DNA of 64,000 nucleotides from Parasitella parasitica NRRL 2501 (GCA_025201805.1 MU619299.1:71304-135303), one strand, 5' to 3'; shown: positions 52,141 through 64,000, numbered from the stretch's first letter. Notes: generated by a model not told the origin, from the sequence alone. Numbers and translations are program-made.

Positions 52141-53407
52141 ACAAAAACTTGTTACATAGTGCCCGATTAGCATCAATAATCCTATTAGCGCTTAGCACTT
52201 CCGTATAATAAACCCATGTGTGTTGTAAAATATCAATGTTTAAAATGTATTTTAGTATTTATTGATACTGATATGATAATAAAACGTATGGATCGATTTG
52301 CGTTATGTAAAAATAGCTTTAACTTTCATGAATGACAAACTTTTGCTCATAATTTATACTAAAGGAAGGGTAGAACCGAGATAGACGAACCTGGAAATCA
52401 TCGAAAAGATTAGAGTTATCCAGTAAAAATACTTCTTTTGATGACGGAAAAATCGATCTTTATAGTCTTTCTCTTGCAACGAAAGCAGCTGCATTGTGAG
52501 TAAATACAAACTTATAGAGGCGACCAAACAATGCACCACATCAATACCTACATGCCCATATATTCTACACAACTGTTGCTCAATTATCTTTTTGCCAAAA
52601 ACCTTGACCAAAACCAATCTGCCGCGATTCTTGTCTCTAGTTTTATAGACTGCCAAAATGGGCCACCATTTATCAAATAAAGTACTGTGTTCTACGGTAG
52701 AGTCAATGTACAATAAATCTGCCAACGGAATCAGGAAGTGCTAAGAAAACGCACATTATTATAAATTATCTATTTTCAATAATGCATCATGTATAATGCT
52801 ACAGGCATATTGGATGTCAACCATGAAGTGGCGTATAGTTTACAGGAAAAATATTTAGAGTAGTTGCTTCGATTTTAGCTTCTGTGTGATGGATTTTTGA
52901 GTAACCACCAAGGTTTATACAGTGATATTATTGAAACAAGCGAATGAAATAGACATCAAAGTCTGTTTTCGATTATAGTCTACTATAGCATAGCAAGTGC
53001 CTATCATGATATATATACAACGTAGTAGACAATTTTGCTACAAGTACAGGCTGCCGTACACAAGTTGCACAAGAATATGGAGAGATGGTCCTACATGATA
53101 CAACCCAAGATGTAACCGATGGCTTTCTCTGCATCATAATGATTCAACAATAATAGCAATGCACAAACAAAATAAATCAGCAACTCGTGTTGGGGAGAGT
53201 ATTATTGTTATTATGATTTTGTTTTTAAGCCGAAGCAATTATACATGTGTATAAATTTTAATTCTTTGCTTCGCCCTCCTTTTCCTGATCTTGAACAGTG
53301 GTTTTTAAGGTTCAAACTGAGCGAATTATATATTTCATCCTTTTTTTATCCCACCAAGAATACCCTTTCTCTTCATTTTCTTACACTACACTGTGTAAAA
53401 AACAAAG

Positions 53408-56100
53408 ATGCAATCATTTGCTCAAAAGTTTACCTATGATGTAGCCTTGTGGATATTCAATCTTATGCTGGATATTTTTTTCCGAGAAGTTCGGCCTAGA
53501 GGAGCGCATAAAATACCCAAAAAAGGTCCAGTTATTTTTGTTGTGGCCCCACACGCAAATCAGGTATGTATATATGTAGGTGGCCTCGCTAGTAATTATT
53601 AACGGTTTAAATACTATAGTTTGTTGATCCCATAGTTCTCATGCGAGAATGTGGCAGAAGGGTTTCATTCCTGATAGCAGAGAAATCAATGCACCAGAAA
53701 GGAATTGGCTTCTTTGCTCGGATGATTAATGCTAGTAAGTTCCTCTATTTATCTGCAGAAATCAATCAAAATTAACGTTTGCAAGTTCCTGTTGTTCGAC
53801 CACAGGATTTGGCGAAACCTGGCAGTGGCCGTATTCAGCTGCTGAACCGCAAAACAGATCCTCTTCGTATTATTGGTATCGATACCCAGTTCACAGCCCA
53901 ATTGAAGCCACGCGATTCGATTGTACTTCCAAAGGGATGTGGTGTATCTGAAGTAGATCAAGTAATCTCGGATACAGAGATAATAATCAAAAAGGAATTT
54001 AAGGAATTGAAGGCGATGGAGATGCTGACGCAAAGCGACGGTACAGCCTACAAATGCATGCCGCATGTTGAGCAGGATTCAGTGTACAGGTGTGTTCATG
54101 ACGAGCTGAACAATGGAAGATGCATCACAATCTTTCCAGAAGGTGGCAGTCATGACAGGGCGGAAATGCTACCTTTGAAAGGTGAGAAAATTTCCTGTTT
54201 GTTTTATGTTTGTGATTTGCTGAATATTGGGGCAACTCTTTTTCTTGTAGCTGGTGTTACGTTGATGGCGTTGGGTGCAATGGCAAAGTATGAAGGGTTG
54301 GATGTTAAAATTGTCCCTTGTGGTAGGCTCTCTTTCTGCTTGAATTTTTCGAGGCATACACTGACCTAGACCATACAATAGGGCTTAACTATTTTCATGC
54401 TCATCGCTTTCGATCTCGCGCAGTGATTGAGTTTGGTAATCCCATCACAGTGTCAGCTGAGCTCGTTCAGAAGTTCAAATCGGGTGGAATAGCAAAGAGA
54501 GAAGCCTGCTCAAATTTACTGGATAGCATCTACAATGCGCTAAAAACAGTGACAATTAATGCGGGAAGTTATGAAACACTTATGGTATGTGTGAATGATT
54601 TAGGTTGTCTTGCAAGACAAATTAAACAAACAAACACCTGCTACAGTTGATTCAAGCTGCAAGGCGACTTTACAAGCCGGCACACAAGAAATTGCATCTT
54701 TCTCAAGTAGTTGATCTGAACAGACGATTTTTGATTGGATACAATATATTCAGGGACGATCCCAAAGTGATGGAGCTACAGCAAAGAGTCATGGCGTACA
54801 ACCAATTACTGAAATATCATGGCATCAAAGATCATCAAGTTTCAAAAACTAACAACGAGAACAACGGCCGGCTGTTATGGCTGCTGATTAAGCGTATATT
54901 TATTCTGATCATTTTGGGTTTGTGGGCATTTCCAGGTGGTATTTTAAATCTCCCGGTTGTTATTGTAGCCAAGGTGATTAGCCAAAAGAAGGCAAAAGGT
55001 AAAGTGAATTTCTACTCTGTACGGGATACCTAACATTTTGCTCCAGATGCTTTGAAAGGATCAACAGTTAAAATTGCAGGTCGGGATGTCCTGGCAACGT
55101 GGAAACTGCTAGTTGGATTGGTATTGCTACCGACATTGTATGGATTTTACAGCTTGATTGTGTTCATCGCTGTACTACAAACGAATTTTGATACAAAATG
55201 GAAGCTGATTTTTCCACTGGCAACATGGAGTCTGCTACCATTCGTGTCTTATGCAAGCTTGAGATTTGGTGAAATTGGTCATGATATCTTCAAGTAGGTT
55301 GGGAAGACAAAGAATTGGTAATGCAACTAAACATCTTAAATAGGTCAATTCAGCCTACAGTGATGGCATTATTAGATCCGCAGGGGGCCGAAACCCTCCG
55401 TCAGAACCGGGAGAAACTATCAAGCAATATCACCGAATTGATCAACGAATATGGGCCCAAAGTATTCCCTGATTTTGATGGTATATATATATATATATAC
55501 ACTGTGCAATCTTGATGAGTGTAGTCAATAACGCACATTAAAATAGCCAATTACATTTCAAGCCCTGTCCCTAGTCGCACAACAAGCACAAACAACATTT
55601 CATGGACATCTGCACCTAGTAAGCTACCCAAGATTGCAAGCGGTTTCTTCCAACAGGCGACGCGCATGAATTGGCTGGACGACAAGAACATATTCAACTG
55701 GGGACGAACTGAGGATTCGGACATGGCTGATGATGTATTCTTCTTTTTGGACAAATTTTATGGCAACATTAGCGGTCGCAGCAGAAGTGGCTCCGTCAGC
55801 GAATCAGACTCAAGACCTGCCAGCCGAAATCGCAGCCGTGCCAACAGCGTCAGTAACGAAAGTTTCATCAAAGTTGAAGGCATGACAAGTTTGCCTGATA
55901 ATAACAATATACCAGATGATGATATTGCTCCTGCTCCGCTCGTCATACAAGATGAAGCCCCCTCAGGTAGCAACAAATCATTGACGGCAAGACGTATATT
56001 TAGAATTGATGATGTCGAGGAGGATGATGAGGAAGAAGAGGAAGATCAGCAAGTAACCGTGCACAAGCTATCAGTGGGAGATAGCAAAAAAGATGTTTAG
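53408..56100 (+). CDS. SCT1: Glycerol-3-phosphate/DHAP sn-1 acyltransferase (Sct1/Gpt2 family), multi-exon
   Basis: FFREVRPRGAHKIP, PHANQFVDP (HxxxxD motif across an intron), IFPEGGSHDR, HRFRSRAVIEFG, GRDVLATWK, and C-terminal TM helices. Confidence 0.95.
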
Positions 56101-56269
56101 GCTATCAGAGATTGGCATCAAAACAAAAAAATACCATAATCAATAAATAAATCTTTGCTAACTCTGAGCGAAATGAATATTCCTATAACCACCCTAGCCA
56201 TTTATATTATACTCCAGGGTTTCCCATTACTATTTTTTTTTTTTTTTTTTTCCCTCACTGCCACCTCAG

Positions 56270-56958
56270 ATGATGTTACGCTGCTTTTCAACCCAAAACA
56301 AATACGCACTAAGCTTAGGTTTACAGCAAAGAAGCCTCAGTTCGACATGTCGCCTATTTAGTAGCAACAAGCCTGATGACAAGGTTATGAAGAGCACAGA
56401 GGAGGATTGGGAGCAGGCAGATGTAAAGCAATCCAGCATTGCCAATTACGCTATTCCACGGCAGGCTTCGTCCGCCATCCCGAGCAGCATGTTGGCAGCA
56501 TTCAACAACATGTTTGACCGCGGACCCAATGTAGGTGTTGAAGTGATCACAAAAAAGGGATTCGTCCTTTCGAACCATATCAAAGTCAACCAACCGCTCA
56601 TTCTACTAAACGGATCACCATTTTTATGGAACGCACCGCCGCGAACAGCTGGATTTCTACCCATGAAAGACTGGGACACTGACACTTTTAGGATATTTGA
56701 GATAGTGTCGCCCAGGCCTGAGTTGATCATGTTTGGTACCGGCCGAGAGTTTGCTCCCATTCCTGAGCATATCAGACAGTATTTCTTTAAGTTAGGAATT
56801 CAAGTAGATCAGATGAATTCTGTAAGTCTTGGCCGAAATGGCTAAACAGTCTTTGTTCTTAACCTTTAAAGTAGAAACATGCAGCCGCGACTTACAATGT
56901 ATTGGCAGAAGAGGGAAGAAGAATTGCAGCAGCTTTATTACCACTTGACGAAAATTAA
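56270..56958 (+). CDS. NDUFAF3: Complex I assembly factor NDUFAF3 (Mth938/DUF498), 2 exons
   Basis: Mitochondrial-type leader, FEIVSPRPELIMFGTG, GIQVDQMNS|KHAAATYNVLAEEGRRIAAALLP; stop at 56956-56958. Confidence 0.93.
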
Positions 56959-56988
56959 ATAAACAAATATGTACAGCTATTTACAAAA

Positions 56989-58328
56989 TCAAGGTTGGAC
57001 TAAAACCCTTTGTTGTTTGTGTATCAGTTGGATGCCACTGTCTCTTGGTGGAGGCGGGAAAGTGATCCGGTCATTGTGAAAGAACGAGGGCCCTTTTCTA
57101 ATCCTTATCACACTAGTGAAAATTGCCTGTATAAATCTCTGTTCGTCAATTAGACGCACATCTTTTCGCAGGCTAGGTTGGTCAGTTACTGTGGCGACCA
57201 GATTTCGTATGTTCCAAGCAGACAGCAAAAACAGTTTTTTGGAGCTGATGTTGTTGTCTTTGAGTTGTCTGTACGTAGTTTTTCGAACCTCTTTCACTAA
57301 ATCGCCCACTGCTTTGGCCCATAATATGTTTTGGCTCAAATCCTTGTTGTCTTCGTCTCGGGCGTATCTTTTCATCTTGGATTCGATTGCCTAATAACCA
57401 GCTATTAGTACGGTTCTTTTGCGAAACTACGCACTTACCAGGTCACAGCGGTTTTTAACAAAGAATACAGGAATGTCGTGTTCTTGTGCTTTTACCGCAA
57501 TGTCCAGATCTATCGACTGCAATCTATTATCTATGTCAGATGATCTTGTGCGCCATCACCTCGGAATTACTTTAAATATGTCCATACCTTTCTGCAGTTA
57601 CAATGATCAGAGAATCAAAGACATTCAAATGATTATCTTCAAAGTAAGTGGCTGAATTATGCGTGCAAGTTCCTCCTCCTGGCATGTCCCACAAGACCAT
57701 TGCTCGTAATTCAGGATGTCTGTGTCCTCGAGGTTCGTCGCGGTACCCAGCCGCCTCGTTAGTGGGCGCTGCACTCGGATGTGTGTCCTGGTAGCCTAAA
57801 AGAGCATTGACCATGGTGCTCTATCATGTTGTGTAAGTTGATGCTTTGCTTACCATCTCTTATGTATACGTACCTTTCCTGTTCCTGCACTGCCGACGAC
57901 TGCTATATTGTAGAATTGGTCACAGTCTACACCAATAGCTCTTCGAGCATTGAATTTGGTTTCTTCCGATATGTCAAGTGGTTTATCAGGGCTCTCAGTG
58001 AAAATGGTTTGATATGCAGACCATAATGCAACAAAAGGAGACAATGGCCCTAAGTAATGATGCATATCAGTGCGTGATGAGTTATGCGATCAAGGCAAAA
58101 CTTACATCCGACAACGCCTAGCAATCCTCCAACTGTGCTGTCTATCATTTTCACTCCCGTATATTCATGTTCACTAAATTTATACGCATTTAAAATTGGA
58201 AATGCTACAATCACCATTGGAACTGAAATGGTTGATAGAGTTGCCTTCTTAAATCGGCTGGAAAAATCATTGATATTGCACAATACATTTGATTTGTTTC
58301 CGAGTGTAATTGAAGCTGCTTGTCCCAT
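56989..58328 (-). CDS. IRG/p47 (IIGP-family) immunity-related-GTPase-like protein, 5 exons
   Basis: Spliced: MGQAAS.., NIAVVGSAGTGKSTMVNALLG (G1), AAPT (G2 region), VLWDMPGGG (G3), YFEDNHLNVFDSLIIVTAERL, PVFFVKNRCD (G4), LFLLSAW (G5). All four introns are canonical GT-AG and keep the frame. Confidence 0.85.
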
Positions 58329-58699
58329 TTTAATTGACTGAAAAAAGACAGAAAAGAGAGAAAGAAGGAGGCCGAGTTTTTCTTGATTTATAGCCTAAAG
58401 GAGGCCAGATCAGGAGCCCTCATCTCAGAGCCATATGGTCGACCTTTTCCGCAGAACAACCAGGCCCAGTTTCATGTGAAAATTTTGTCAGGAGGTCATG
58501 GGTTGGCAAGCATCATCCAATGTTTTCTAGCTACAAAATGTGAACTCTATGCTGAATTATACGATAATTTTTCTCATATTAACCACACCTATTTCCAAAG
58601 CATGGTATATCCGTATTTTCTCTCTTTACATGACGAAATTGTTAGGAAAAAAGCTTTAATTCAACATTTGTTGCTCTATGAACATGTATACGTAAACAT

Positions 58700-59890
58700 G
58701 GCTTGTGCAACGTGCAACAACAAATGCAGGAATTCGTGATTTCAAATATTACATATATCAAGTACAGCATTTCCCTCCTGACTTGAAGATCAGAGGTGGA
58801 TTATCTAAATACTATTGACTCTATTTGTGATCCCATCAATTCTTGGCCATGCTGTACGATAATAAGCCTGGGATCTTGTCTGATTACATATGACATTCGC
58901 TTGTGTAATGTAGTATTTAGTTCAGCGCCATACATGCTATGATATTCACGTTTAAGAAATACACCTTTTTTTAAAAAATATTCGTAAACTGGAGCAAGAG
59001 ATTTCGCACACTTGAAAAAACGTCTGTGGAATAAAATATGGATCAGCTATTGAAAAGTTTTGTATAGATGTCTAATAAAATCTCGTGCACTTTTGAAAAA
59101 AAAAATCGTACAGATCTTTTGCACAGAGGTTTGTAATTGTACCACATCCAAGCAACCTTGAAATTTTGACACCAAGTATTAACAAGCACTTTGCAACCCG
59201 CTCGAGTAGATATTATTACAGGCTTCAGTAATTCTAGGTAGCAGTGTTTTTTCAGGTGAAGAGACCCTTTTCAGAATTCAGTTTTGGTCCTACTTTATTT
59301 TCAACTCTCAAGTTTCAGCACTAGCAAGCAGTACCTCTTCAACAGCCATCTCTATCATCCTCGTTAATTGCAAATATGCTCTTACCTGAATCTTTGAGTA
59401 AATTCTTTGTATAGGCCACGTTTTTTTCTTTTTCTTTATATATATGGCTTCGCCTAATCTGTCAAAAGAAAAATAGCCTTCACAACAAGATTGTAAAGTC
59501 TCTTGTCAGTTCTTTGCTCATCCTTTTTAAAAGTTGCCCAAGCTTGAAAGCAACGCATATCCGTGTATAAAACCAATCTTATCAATATTTGAAGCATTGT
59601 TGTTGAAAACAGTAATGGCTTCATTTGTTGCAACATGACCTGGCTGAGAGTCGGTGTTCTCGCTTACCATAGTAGATGTAACATTATCTTGATCATCGGT
59701 CTGCAGTGAAGTCGCTTGGAGTAAATCTGGTTTCTCTGATACAGTTAACAAAGTCATTGAAGGTTGTTGAAGGCTTTTGAAGACTATTGTTAAACCTGTT
59801 GAAGCCCTGTTAAAGTCTGTTGTTTAGTCTGTTCTTGAGCCTATTATTGAGTCTATTGTTGAATCTATTGTTGAGCCTGCTGAAGTTTGT
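58700..59890 (-). pseudogene. Degenerate gene or transposon-derived fragment
   Basis: Minus-strand coding-like stretches (59527-59757, 59454-59636, ..AWPRIDGI..) interrupted by stops and frameshifts. Family not identified. Confidence 0.35.
59811..59882 (+). repeat. Degenerate 12-bp minisatellite (consensus about TTGAGTCTATTG, about 6 copies)
   Basis: Units ttgagcctatta, ttgagtctattg, ttgaatctattg, ttgagcctgctg, plus more diverged upstream copies. Confidence 0.7.
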
Positions 59891-61299: not shown

Positions 61300-61920
61300 A
61301 CCAAAGAGAACTGCTTTATGCAGCAGAAAGCATTTCCATGGCAAATCAGTCGAGGTAGATCATACGAAGAAGATAGTTATAGATGCAAATCAAGCAAGCC
61401 GCTGTATTAGATGCGAGAAAAAAATGCTTGAAGATATCAACAACAGCAGTAGCACCCATTTTTACTACGTGAAACTTCTCGATTTATTGGCAGATATTCA
61501 ATAGGATAATTCTGGAATGGCCGCTATTTTTAGACAAGAGAACCAGTTGTTTAGAGAGGAAAATGAAAGACTACATCAACAACTGGCCAGCAAATAGTGA
61601 AAGATCAAGAGATGTGCTGATTATCCTGTAATCAAGAGAAGAAAAATTGACAAAGGCAAGCAAAAGGAAGCGAATTACATTGGTATTGGTACTGATGAAG
61701 ACGAATTTATGAATACTATTTATGTAATTTTTATTCAATTGTTTTTTCTTATGTATTTAACTAAGCATAAAACATGAGCATTTTTAAGTGTATCACAAAG
61801 GATAATTGCACCATCCATAAATCAAAACCGATGATCAGGAAGATTGAAAGTCGCGGTTATAAGGTGATTCATCTACCCCCTTATTCGGCTGAGTTACTGT
61901 CATTTTGCAGTTTCTGTAAA
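61300..61920 (+). mobile_element. Tc1/mariner (IS630-like) DDE transposase relic
   Basis: 61801-61896 translates DNCTIHKSKPMIRKIESRGYKVIHLPPYSAEL, the DN..H..LPPYSP(D/E)LN motif, then decays. Upstream sequence is fragmentary, so the left boundary is approximate. Confidence 0.85.
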
Positions 61921-64000
61921 AAACTTTAAAGTAAATGATAAAGGTCATAATGATTATGATAATATATATTAGGATTTCTGGTAACAAACCTTTTATTTCC
62001 GACGAAAGCTTAAAAGTTTCTGAGAGGAAAGAAATGTCTCCCTGAAAAGGTTTTAAGTGGGGATTTCCATATTCAGAGAAAAAGAGTAACTGCTTTGTTT
62101 TTTTCGTAGTAAGAATACAAAGAGAATGTGTTGTGAAATAAGCTTTCTACGTCATATCTTTAGGTTCAAGGTAGCCTTTAAGAAAGATTACGGCTGTCTA
62201 TAGACAAATATCTGTGATTCTGTATGTAAGTGTATCTGTTGACTTTAGATCAAAAACCTTTAATTGGATTCAGGAGCGGGGAGTAAGGTTGAAGATAAAC
62301 ACATTTATATCCTTAGGACTTCATAAATTTCTATGCAGATGATTTTTTATGAATGGATGTGTTATCCTGGTGTAATTGTTTCCTTTTCTCTGGCATTTTC
62401 TTATACCTTCAGTTGATCTAAAGGTCTTGTCAGACAAGTACCAAGCTGATTTCTATATATTCAGCAGTACAGTAGAACAGCTAGTAAAACCTGTGCCATC
62501 TTTTTCAATATTGGAATGGTTCAAAAGTGTGTCTTTGTAAAGCCAGCGTAGATTCTAGGCGCCTAACTTTTTTTTTTTGGTCTACGCGGACTTCAGTGTG
62601 TTGTTTTCAAAAAAAAAGACAAAAACTGTAAGAAAACAATGTTAAGCAATCTCAAACACAAAAAAAAAAAGTAATTAAAGCAATGCATTTGACTATAAGG
62701 CACTTTTTGATTACATATTTGCAAAGCTTAAAGAAAGATTTTGTTCTTTTTAAGTTGACATCAGATGAAAGTAACGACTTTTTGCTTTTTTTTCAGAAAA
62801 GTATTTTTCAAAATCGGAGCGTGAGGAATTTAAGCCAGTTACAGACATCCAAGTACTACCATTAAAAAGCCAAGAATTACACAATTTAATAAACGAGGTT
62901 TCAATTGTTTTTCTTTTGAATTAGTTAAGTTATGGCTTCTCAAAGCTAATGCTTTCTTCAAAAAAAGCACCATTTTTCTTTGATGGCGGAGATTAAACGC
63001 ATCTAAAATTAGGAAGAAAAAATTCTTTCAAAAACTCCATTTGGACAATTCGAAACCAAAATTACTTCTTTGAGGCAAAATATTATCTTCCGATACTATG
63101 CATACTACAGTTGTCAGTTAATGATCATAGATGTATTTTTGGGCGCTCTACAAGATGGTATCATTACATGATTCCCGTATGCTTATACAAGTAATTCTGC
63201 TGAGAAAACCTCAAAAGCAGATTAAGAGGGAGAAGTCAACATTTTGCTTAATCAGAGCGCATTTCCAGTCTTTCAGATCAAGGAATGAGCTTTTACGATC
63301 ATTTTACTCTAATATATGCTATAGTAAAAAGTCACATTTTTGAGGTCAAAATCGAGGATAATGCATAACCTACGATTTTGGATGCGTGGATACAAGGAAA
63401 AAAATGAAAAAATCCGTCATTTTGCATCGAAAAAAAAAAATCATGCTCAAATTGCACCAAAATCATATATAATATAGTTGTTTCCCAATGGATACTATTT
63501 CTGGTGTTTTCAGGGCACTTTTGATTATGAAAATTAATCAAAAAATGGCACACACAGCTAAAGTTCTTGCTTTTAAGATGTAAAAATATGTTTCTGGAGG
63601 CGATATCAAGTCAATATCAATTCTAGTACATGACTAAGTCCTATAAAGTAAGTATTTTTGATACCACAAGAATACATTTCTTCACGATACTATAATCAAA
63701 CAGATGTGGCCGATTGAGTTGGAAGCAGAAGAGGGTAATTAATGCATACAATGTTTTGCTGTAATAACCCCTTGTTATTTATGAATAATTCAAATGAATA
63801 ACGATTATTTCCAAAGACAATTAATAAAGAGACTGCAAGTGATTATATCACGAAGCACGAAAGGTCTTTATTAATGATTGAAAAAGGAAGCCAAATTGCT
63901 CTGGTCCTGGTATCTAAAAGTTTTTATACAATTCCATTTGAATTCAGTGTCAATGTTGGAATTGAGATGAGATTACCTCCAGTTAATAGGCAAAAACCGA

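Follow-up and report, generated by a model that had tools for sequence, protein, structure and literature searches.

An IRG-type GTPase gene in the mycoparasite Parasitella parasitica: evolution points to a conserved membrane function over a defence effector

IRG proteins are usually regarded as a vertebrate, interferon-driven invention, and the presence of a gene of this type in a fungus raises the question of what such a GTPase may be doing there. The gene considered here lies on the minus strand, at positions 56989-58328 of the window, that is, the whole stretch of 64,000 nucleotides that was analysed from Parasitella parasitica NRRL 2501 (GCA_025201805.1 MU619299.1:71304-135303). An earlier note on this DNA, made from the sequence alone, had described it as an intact GTPase of the IRG/p47 type with an N-myristoylation motif and N-terminal hydrophobic segments, and as a candidate for cell-autonomous defence. 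The observations made in the present analysis concern the structure of the gene, its transcription and splicing, the family to which it belongs, the states of its motifs, its conservation and the number of its copies. The explanation that best accommodates them, to which a probability slightly better than even is assigned, is that of a membrane-anchored IRG-type GTPase working through the pairing of G domains, which would act as a weakened or regulatory partner of a second copy of the gene (belonging to clade B, see below) and would have a conserved cellular role.

At the level of the transcript, five exons on the minus strand add up to 1119 nt, stop codon included, and encode 372 amino acids with a single terminal stop. 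The parts of the gene are the following:

Exon 1, 58106..58328, minus strand: start codon, MGQAAS motif, hydrophobic segment 1 and the beginning of segment 2; based on the reading frame, the GT donor, an upstream in-frame stop, conservation and hydropathy, with an RNA contig covering 58105-58268.
Intron 1, 58050..58105, minus strand: 56 nt, GT..AG, phase 1, interrupting a Trp codon; skipped in the RNA contig.
Exon 2, 57874..58049, minus strand: second part of hydrophobic segment 2 (WPLSPFVALW), plus a linker helix and the P-loop of G1, GSAGTGK(S).
Intron 2, 57821..57873, minus strand: 53 nt, GT..AG; skipped in the RNA contig.
Exon 3, 57588..57820, minus strand: remodelled switch I (T-N-E-A-A-G-Y-R-D-E-P), G3 (WDMPG) and switch II; based on the Pfam IIGP score of 33.2 bits, on PDB matches to IRG chains only and, for switch I, on mapping by alignment.
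Intron 3, 57524..57587, minus strand: 64 nt, GT..AG; the database model P0198 wrongly runs into it.
Exon 4, 57439..57523, minus strand: G4 motif NRCD, against a family consensus of NKAD/SKSD.
Intron 4, 57391..57438, minus strand: 48 nt, GT..AG; skipped in the RNA contig.
Exon 5, 56989..57390, minus strand: helical insert, G5 (LFLLSAW), a single C-terminal helix, a tail modelled with low confidence and the stop codon.

In a public RNA-derived run (X1), a 1593-nt contig crosses the gene at 100% identity and leaves gaps at 57390-57437, 57524-57587, 57821-57873 and 58049/50-58105, whose ends on the plus strand read CT..AC, equivalent to GT..AG on the gene strand. Since this contig skips exactly the four introns, the gene is transcribed and spliced as had been modelled from the sequence. 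The contig ends at 58268, so that the ATG at 58328 falls outside the RNA coverage; this codon is the earliest in-frame ATG downstream of an in-frame stop located 23 codons upstream, and the first eight residues that follow from it (MGQAASIT) are identical in seven orthologues. In the databases, the gene is represented by P0198, a "hypothetical protein" of 178 aa from Parasitella parasitica that covers 57581-58217 of the window, begins at the internal Met38 and is identical to the window gene through the exons before reading into intron 3. Because of this exact exon match, P0198 can be regarded on sequence grounds as a truncated model of the same gene, and the RNA-supported 372-aa model corrects this public fragment. 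Many database models of the IRG-type family in Mucorales are likewise fragments of 170-260 aa.

Regarding the family to which the product belongs, searches were run by single exon or with database orthologues, and the joined coding sequence was employed for the reading frame, hydropathy, local BLAST, MAFFT alignment, tree building and the ratio of nonsynonymous to synonymous substitution rates (dN/dS). Exon 3 alone scored well beyond chance against Pfam IIGP (PF05049), with a cut-off of 24 bits for the score listed above, and the locus reached 35.5 bits in a six-frame search of the genome; exons 1, 2, 4 and 5 individually gave no Pfam match, and exon 5 alone had no match among PDB sequences. 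An exon-3 profile built from both genome copies recovered from the PDB only IRG chains (Irga6, Irgb10, Irgb6 and GM4951), and against 1.84 billion representatives it retrieved 977 relatives at E <= 0.001. Full-length orthologues scored 62-113 bits with IIGP; in the comparison with MMR_HSR1 the values were 87-113 bits for IIGP and 30-43 bits for MMR_HSR1, which was always well under IIGP. When a profile of 27 family sequences was compared with the PDB, the IRGs were found at 107-128 bits and the next family, mt-EngA, at 45 bits; sequence identity was 26-28% to IRGs versus 14-18% to other GTPase families. The motifs quoted in the earlier note (GSAGTGKS, WDMPG, FVKNRCD, LFLLSA, MGQAAS and the two hydrophobic stretches) are all present, G1 being of the GKS class, G5 containing LLSA and G4 reading NRCD, with its lysine replaced by arginine and its aspartate retained. 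By sequence, the product is classified as a 372-aa IRG-type (Pfam IIGP) GTPase of the GKS class, and the original description of an intact family member is borne out by the IIGP scores, the profile search of the PDB and the Foldseek comparison described below.

It could be argued that the likeness to IRGs is superficial and that the gene encodes a TRAFAC GTPase of the Era, EngA, EngB or HSR1 type, devoted to ribosome assembly or to some other housekeeping task. MMR_HSR1 finds no match at the locus in the six-frame genome search at E <= 1e-3, the NCBIfam equivalogs Era, Der, YsxC and HydF reach only 19-30 bits against cut-offs of 116-325, and Roc, FeoB, RsgA and Dynamin_N remain below their cut-offs on full-length orthologues. 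Given that the IRGs are ahead of every other family by more than 60 bits in profile score, and also in identity, this alternative is effectively refuted and retains a negligible probability. Neither does any family model for dynamin/mitofusin, septin or AIG1 (GIMAP) pass its cut-off. A best match to Era/HSR1, AIG1 or septin, which had been named at the outset as the result that would overturn the assignment, was looked for in these searches and was not found.

The fold was examined on P0159 from Mucor circinelloides, the closest complete orthologue (67% identical), modelled with the family alignment. The model has a mean predicted local distance difference test (pLDDT) value of 73, with values >90 over most of residues 100-300 and <50 for residues 1-74 and 341-380. 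In Foldseek, ranks 1-37 are all IRG structures, headed by mouse GM4951 (E 2.7e-13), and mitofusins come after them. The resemblance is confined to one part of the IRG architecture: Pfam IIGP matches of the orthologues span only profile positions ~35-240 of 375, and the structural alignment reaches only residues 66-257 of Irga6. Because both are partial in this way, the IRG helical domain is taken to be absent, and the modelled protein, confident to about residue 340, consists of an IRG-type G domain with a helical insert behind G4, a single C-terminal helix and then a disordered tail. The proposed anatomy is that of a membrane anchor followed by a single IRG-like G domain with its helical insert and the one C-terminal helix. 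The description of the protein as an Irga6-like effector overstates the likeness, as the helical domain is missing and the window copy has no equivalent of Irga6 Glu106.

The N-terminal region carries the putative membrane anchor. Among 27 Mucoromycotina sequences, G2 and S6 are conserved at >=90% and P37, P44, P76 and P79 are invariant, while 35 of 134 complete representatives start with MGxxx[S/T]. The four invariant prolines fall within the hydrophobic stretches, the first of which (residues ~27-52, encoded by exon 1, with Pro37 and Pro44) peaks at 1.70 on the Kyte-Doolittle scale in 19-residue windows, and the second (residues ~64-87) at 1.55. The N-terminal 100 codons also show the lowest dN/dS (0.09-0.10) and 90% identity between two Parasitella assemblies. 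The myristoylation-type start and the N-terminal hydrophobic segments announced for this gene are therefore present and conserved among orthologues. The first 100 residues of P0159, used for a feature search of the ESM Atlas, yielded no usable match. It is proposed that an N-myristoylated glycine and two proline-containing hydrophobic segments, arranged as a hairpin or as two short spans, anchor the protein to an internal membrane from the cytosolic side. If the lipidated N-terminus and the G domain are both cytosolic, the chain has to cross the membrane an even number of times or form a monotopic hairpin, and this layout agrees with that.

Concerning the number of copies, a six-frame search of the 32.8-Mb genome found two loci above the IIGP cut-off, the window gene and a paralogue on contig 21 (L001:984-2380). 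The latter encodes 373 aa that are 44% identical to the window product, has all four intron positions and phases in common with it plus one extra intron in the C-terminal part, and ends in a tail rich in Lys, Ser and Asn. The two copies differ in their identity to Mucor orthologues, 85-88% for the contig-21 paralogue and 67% for the window gene. The relatives that bear a name belong to some 30 Mucorales genera and to Umbelopsis, Endogone and Jimgerdemannia, with broadly one orthologue per species over the Mucorales, Umbelopsidales and Endogonales, and are labelled in databases as "interferon-inducible GTPase-domain-containing" or "IRG-type G domain-containing"; no relative was found in other fungal groups at E <= 1e-15, within the sensitivity of a word-indexed search. 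On these sequence comparisons it is a small family that, among fungi, is specific to Mucoromycotina. The exon-3 profile also reaches proteins of fish, turtle, lizard, nematode and choanoflagellate. A maximum-likelihood tree separates three groups. Clade A contains the window gene and sequences from Mucor, Rhizopus, Choanephora, Helicostylum and Pilobolus (support 100/99, with a long stem of 0.51); clade B contains the contig-21 paralogue and copies from Mucor, Gilbertella and Rhizopus; and clade C gathers copies beginning with MGN or MGS and has no member in the Parasitella parasitica genome, where a search with the clade-C protein P0211 returned the same two loci only. An ancestral-type group (Radiomyces, Apophysomyces, Umbelopsis, Cunninghamella, Absidia and Lichtheimia) keeps 65-83% identity across orders, and clade A is best read from the tree as a derived paralogue.

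What distinguishes this derived paralogue is its switch I and its G4. In a profile alignment, the family switch I T-G-E-x-E-x-T maps onto T102-G103-V-V-E106-V-T108 of Irga6, and both ancestral-type copies and clade B retain this motif together with an N/SKxD G4. In clade A, all eight sequences (8/8) are devoid of an acidic residue at the position of Irga6 Glu106 under two alignments, a feature that is new relative to the earlier note. The window gene keeps the equivalent of Thr102, has Ala or Gly in the place of Glu106 and Tyr or Arg in the place of Thr108, and shares the NRCD version of G4 with most clade-A copies; clade A also scores 78 bits to Irga6, versus 127 for the whole family. It has been demonstrated that every Glu106 mutant of Irga6 failed to activate hydrolysis, while E106A still oligomerised, and that the GMS regulatory IRGs carry E106R (PMC3042988). 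These features suggest that clade A is a catalytically weakened copy. Because the Glu106 and Thr108 equivalents are lost and G4 reads NRCD, the window copy probably hydrolyses GTP slowly or defectively and acts as a partner to the canonical contig-21 paralogue, and the proposed mechanism gives it the role of a slow, weakened or regulatory partner of clade B.

A different view of the same residues would be that the protein is a fully active, self-sufficient homodimeric GTPase that tethers or fuses an organelle membrane (endoplasmic reticulum, vacuole or lipid droplet), by analogy with the hairpin-anchored atlastin/Sey1 or mitofusin. The change in switch I would be offset by clade-specific residues and regulatory pairing would be unnecessary. 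This is a serious alternative that nevertheless appears unlikely. No clade-A sequence is acidic at the Glu106 position in either of two independent alignments, arginine replaces the G4 lysine, and the long stem of clade A, along with its lower similarity to IRGs, indicates a functional shift after duplication.

As to mechanism, the protein is proposed to work as Irga6 and other dynamin-like GTPases do, its G domains pairing head to head in a nucleotide-dependent way, either on one membrane or between membranes. A complex of the clade-A and clade-B G domains, both from Rhizopus microsporus and with GTP included, was predicted with a score of 0.75, compared to 0.28 for the best control; this score is reached by 51 of 78 solved complexes and by 2 of 108 mismatched pairs. 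Contact agreement between runs was >=96%, partner pLDDT was >=84, and the predicted interface takes in the P-loop, switch II and G4 regions. The prediction amounts to a likeness to the solved Irga6 G dimer and to compatibility with pairing through the G face, and no more. A bolder extension would be that core Mucorales possess a two-component IRG-type system, arisen by independent duplication, in which clade B is canonical, membrane-anchored and competent for hydrolysis, and clade A, its Glu106-type switch I being disabled, pairs with it via the G face and controls the places at which clade B may be activated; this must be considered a long shot. If true, such a system could serve hyphal or mycoparasitic fusion, or act against endobacteria.

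The function originally put forward for the gene was defence: a myristoylated IRG-like GTPase, as a cell-autonomous effector, would load onto the membranes around intracellular bacteria, or act in non-self reactions of which mycoparasitic fusion is an example, with a disruptive effect like that of Irga6 on parasite vacuoles. Several features speak for it. The nearest characterised relatives are immune effectors, the conserved myristoylation-type motif is like that of Irga6, Irgb10 and GM4951 (PMC12749288), the source organism is a mycoparasite, a repeat-rich region lies upstream of the gene, and the rate at which clade A evolves is about double that of its neighbours and also exceeds that of clade B, as reflected in their identities to Mucor. 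The evolutionary evidence goes in the opposite direction. Against a second Parasitella assembly, the gene as a whole has a dN/dS of 0.16-0.18 and its G domain one of 0.15-0.17; three neighbouring coding stretches give 0.05-0.15. The family is not expanded, with two copies in the genome, and keeps about one orthologue per species across deep divergences. P0172, a protein also labelled Parasitella parasitica, is 77-80% identical to the window product, which raised the possibility of an IRG-like hypervariable locus; this was rejected, as the DUF498 and acyltransferase neighbours are equally diverged in L005, the other assembly with that label (79-80% DNA identity, compared to 79% for the GTPase gene). 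Moreover, the helical domain, which is the means by which IRGs attack membranes, is absent, the equivalent of Glu106, needed for Irga6 activity, is lost in the window copy, and the defence-system profiles of PADLOC returned nothing above noise (16 bits at most). The literature found for PF05049 was mammalian only, and neither a functional study of the family in Mucorales nor any other work linking it to them was found. The claim of a fast-evolving defence gene is thus not supported, and low copy number together with purifying selection come close to the strictly single-copy, slowly evolving gene that the earlier note had itself set down as evidence against its proposal. In view of the two loci, the broad distribution of orthologues, the dN/dS values and the equally diverged flanks, evolution points to a conserved cellular membrane function over an arms-race defence effector, for which a distinctly low probability is retained.

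The same values bear on whether the gene is a decaying or non-functional duplicate, as its degenerate switch I and G4 and the 178-aa database fragment could make one think. The frame is intact, the transcript is correctly spliced, the orthogroup has been kept in Mucor, Rhizopus, Choanephora, Helicostylum and Pilobolus, and the fragment is an error of gene modelling in a gene that is itself unbroken. Purifying selection and splicing effectively refute this possibility, which can hardly be given any weight.

Some considerations weigh against the interpretation of the window gene as a membrane-anchored, weakened partner with a conserved role. Lipidation, membrane topology, organelle, pairing and weakened catalysis are the parts of it that we infer. 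At the N-terminus, hydropathy maxima of 1.55-1.70 are borderline for transmembrane helices, and residues 1-74 belong to the part of the P0159 model with pLDDT <50. Switch I forms a loop and contains an indel of one residue, which makes the equivalence of its residues dependent on the alignment, and clade A has an invariant Glu of its own (the "EP" motif), two residues beyond the Thr108 position, that might compensate in catalysis. The predicted complex may echo memory of the solved Irga6 dimer (5FPH) and does not tell hetero-pairs from homo-pairs. As for expression, the evidence comes from one assembled RNA run. Finally, pairwise dN/dS is an average that can mask positive selection at a few sites, and a conserved low-copy gene can still serve immunity.

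The surroundings of the gene include the following features:

DUF498-family gene, 56270-56958, plus strand: two exons with an intron at 56822-56874 (GT..AG), supported by the RNA contig.
Acyltransferase-family gene, ~53100-56100, plus strand: multi-exon, with Pfam Acyltransferase found on the L005 orthologue of 798 aa.
Dispersed repeat, 61895-63792: ~1.9 kb, with >=40 copies at 80-89% identity on many contigs.

The DUF498-family gene is convergent with the GTPase gene, their stop codons being 30 nt apart, and since a single X1 RNA contig includes the two of them, an overlap of their 3' ends is probable. Both neighbours are syntenic with the GTPase gene in L005, where synteny stops about 550 bp upstream of the ATG; the position of a glycerolipid acyltransferase beside a possible membrane or lipid-droplet GTPase may be a coincidence. 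Over 53100-58900 of the window, the two assemblies labelled P. parasitica differ by about 20% at the DNA level across the three genes, which looks like divergence between species and not like strain variation. In the L005 orthologue (L005:10001-11389), intron 4 aligns with a GC donor instead of GT, which probably explains the omission from P0172 of 10 residues that include the G4 motif. On the other side, about 3.5 kb upstream of the GTPase gene, lies the dispersed repeat at 61895-63792. Because it is dispersed and has no long open reading frame, it can be assigned to a family of transposon relics, in agreement with the relics that had been noticed next to the gene. Two further segments of ~530 bp, at 59300-59833 and at G000:C63:135494-136036, are 96% identical, inverted and about 4.4 kb apart, and flank a repeat-rich segment; they could represent long terminal inverted repeats bounding a large element, the second copy being just past the end of the window. 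A second RNA contig (1489 nt; 58618-59200 and beyond, plus strand) begins upstream of the GTPase ATG, at a distance of about 290 bp, and heads away from it; no long open reading frame is found in its first kilobases, and a divergent transcript, either non-coding or rich in introns, with a promoter region in common with the GTPase gene is one possibility.

The conservation of the family in Mucoromycotina, together with the presence of animal proteins and a single choanoflagellate protein among the closest relatives retrieved, suggests that the module formed by a G domain and a lipid anchor is old and that its original job was perhaps ordinary membrane biology. The fungal proteins are small, come in two or three copies and occur in genetically tractable species of Mucor and Rhizopus, some of which harbour endobacteria. 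This makes them a simple setting in which to study what the G domain does without the helical domain, and whether an altered paralogue regulates a canonical one.

Compared with mouse Irga6 (IIGP1), of the GKS class, the fungal protein has neither the N-terminal nor the C-terminal helical domain and corresponds only to residues 66-257. Two hydrophobic segments with prolines separate its myristoylation motif from its G domain, G4 is followed by a helical insert about 50 residues long, and the window copy is without the equivalents of Glu106 and Thr108. The fungal family is low-copy and conserved, not expanded and polymorphic, and to our knowledge fungi have no interferon system. Myristoylation is a feature of Irga6, Irgb10 and GM4951 and not of every IRG, and the fungal MGQAAS is a conserved sequence motif for a putative modification of this kind. 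Atlastin/Sey1, mitofusin/Fzo1 and bacterial BDLP have a membrane hairpin after the G domain and an essential helical bundle. The fungal anchor, unlike theirs, lies ahead of the G domain, and a stalk is almost lacking; identity to them is only 14-18%, and Pfam Dynamin_N stays below its cut-off. A closer precedent for IRG-type GTPases in housekeeping membrane work is GM4951 (Iigp1c), an IRG of lipid droplets that serves metabolism and not immunity, and whose choice of membrane is governed by G2 and by the first 50 residues (PMC12749288). Its work on lipid droplets shows that a GTPase of the IRG type is not necessarily an immune effector. It differs from the fungal protein in having a full IRG helical domain, tail-to-tail dimers and no hydrophobic hairpin, and by analogy a location of the fungal protein on lipid droplets is a possibility only. 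With regard to the proposed partnership, the GMS proteins Irgm1, Irgm2 and Irgm3 carry substitutions in the catalytic interface, including the Glu106 position, and pair with GKS proteins via the G-domain interface (PMC3042988). Clades A and B of core Mucorales show the same kind of asymmetry. The hallmark change of GMS proteins lies in G1 (GKS to GMS), which is canonical in the window gene, and the fungal duplication is independent; regulation of clade B by clade A would be a putative counterpart. If the two-component system is true, it would be the fungal equivalent of the way in which mouse GMS and GKS proteins "guard" self membranes.
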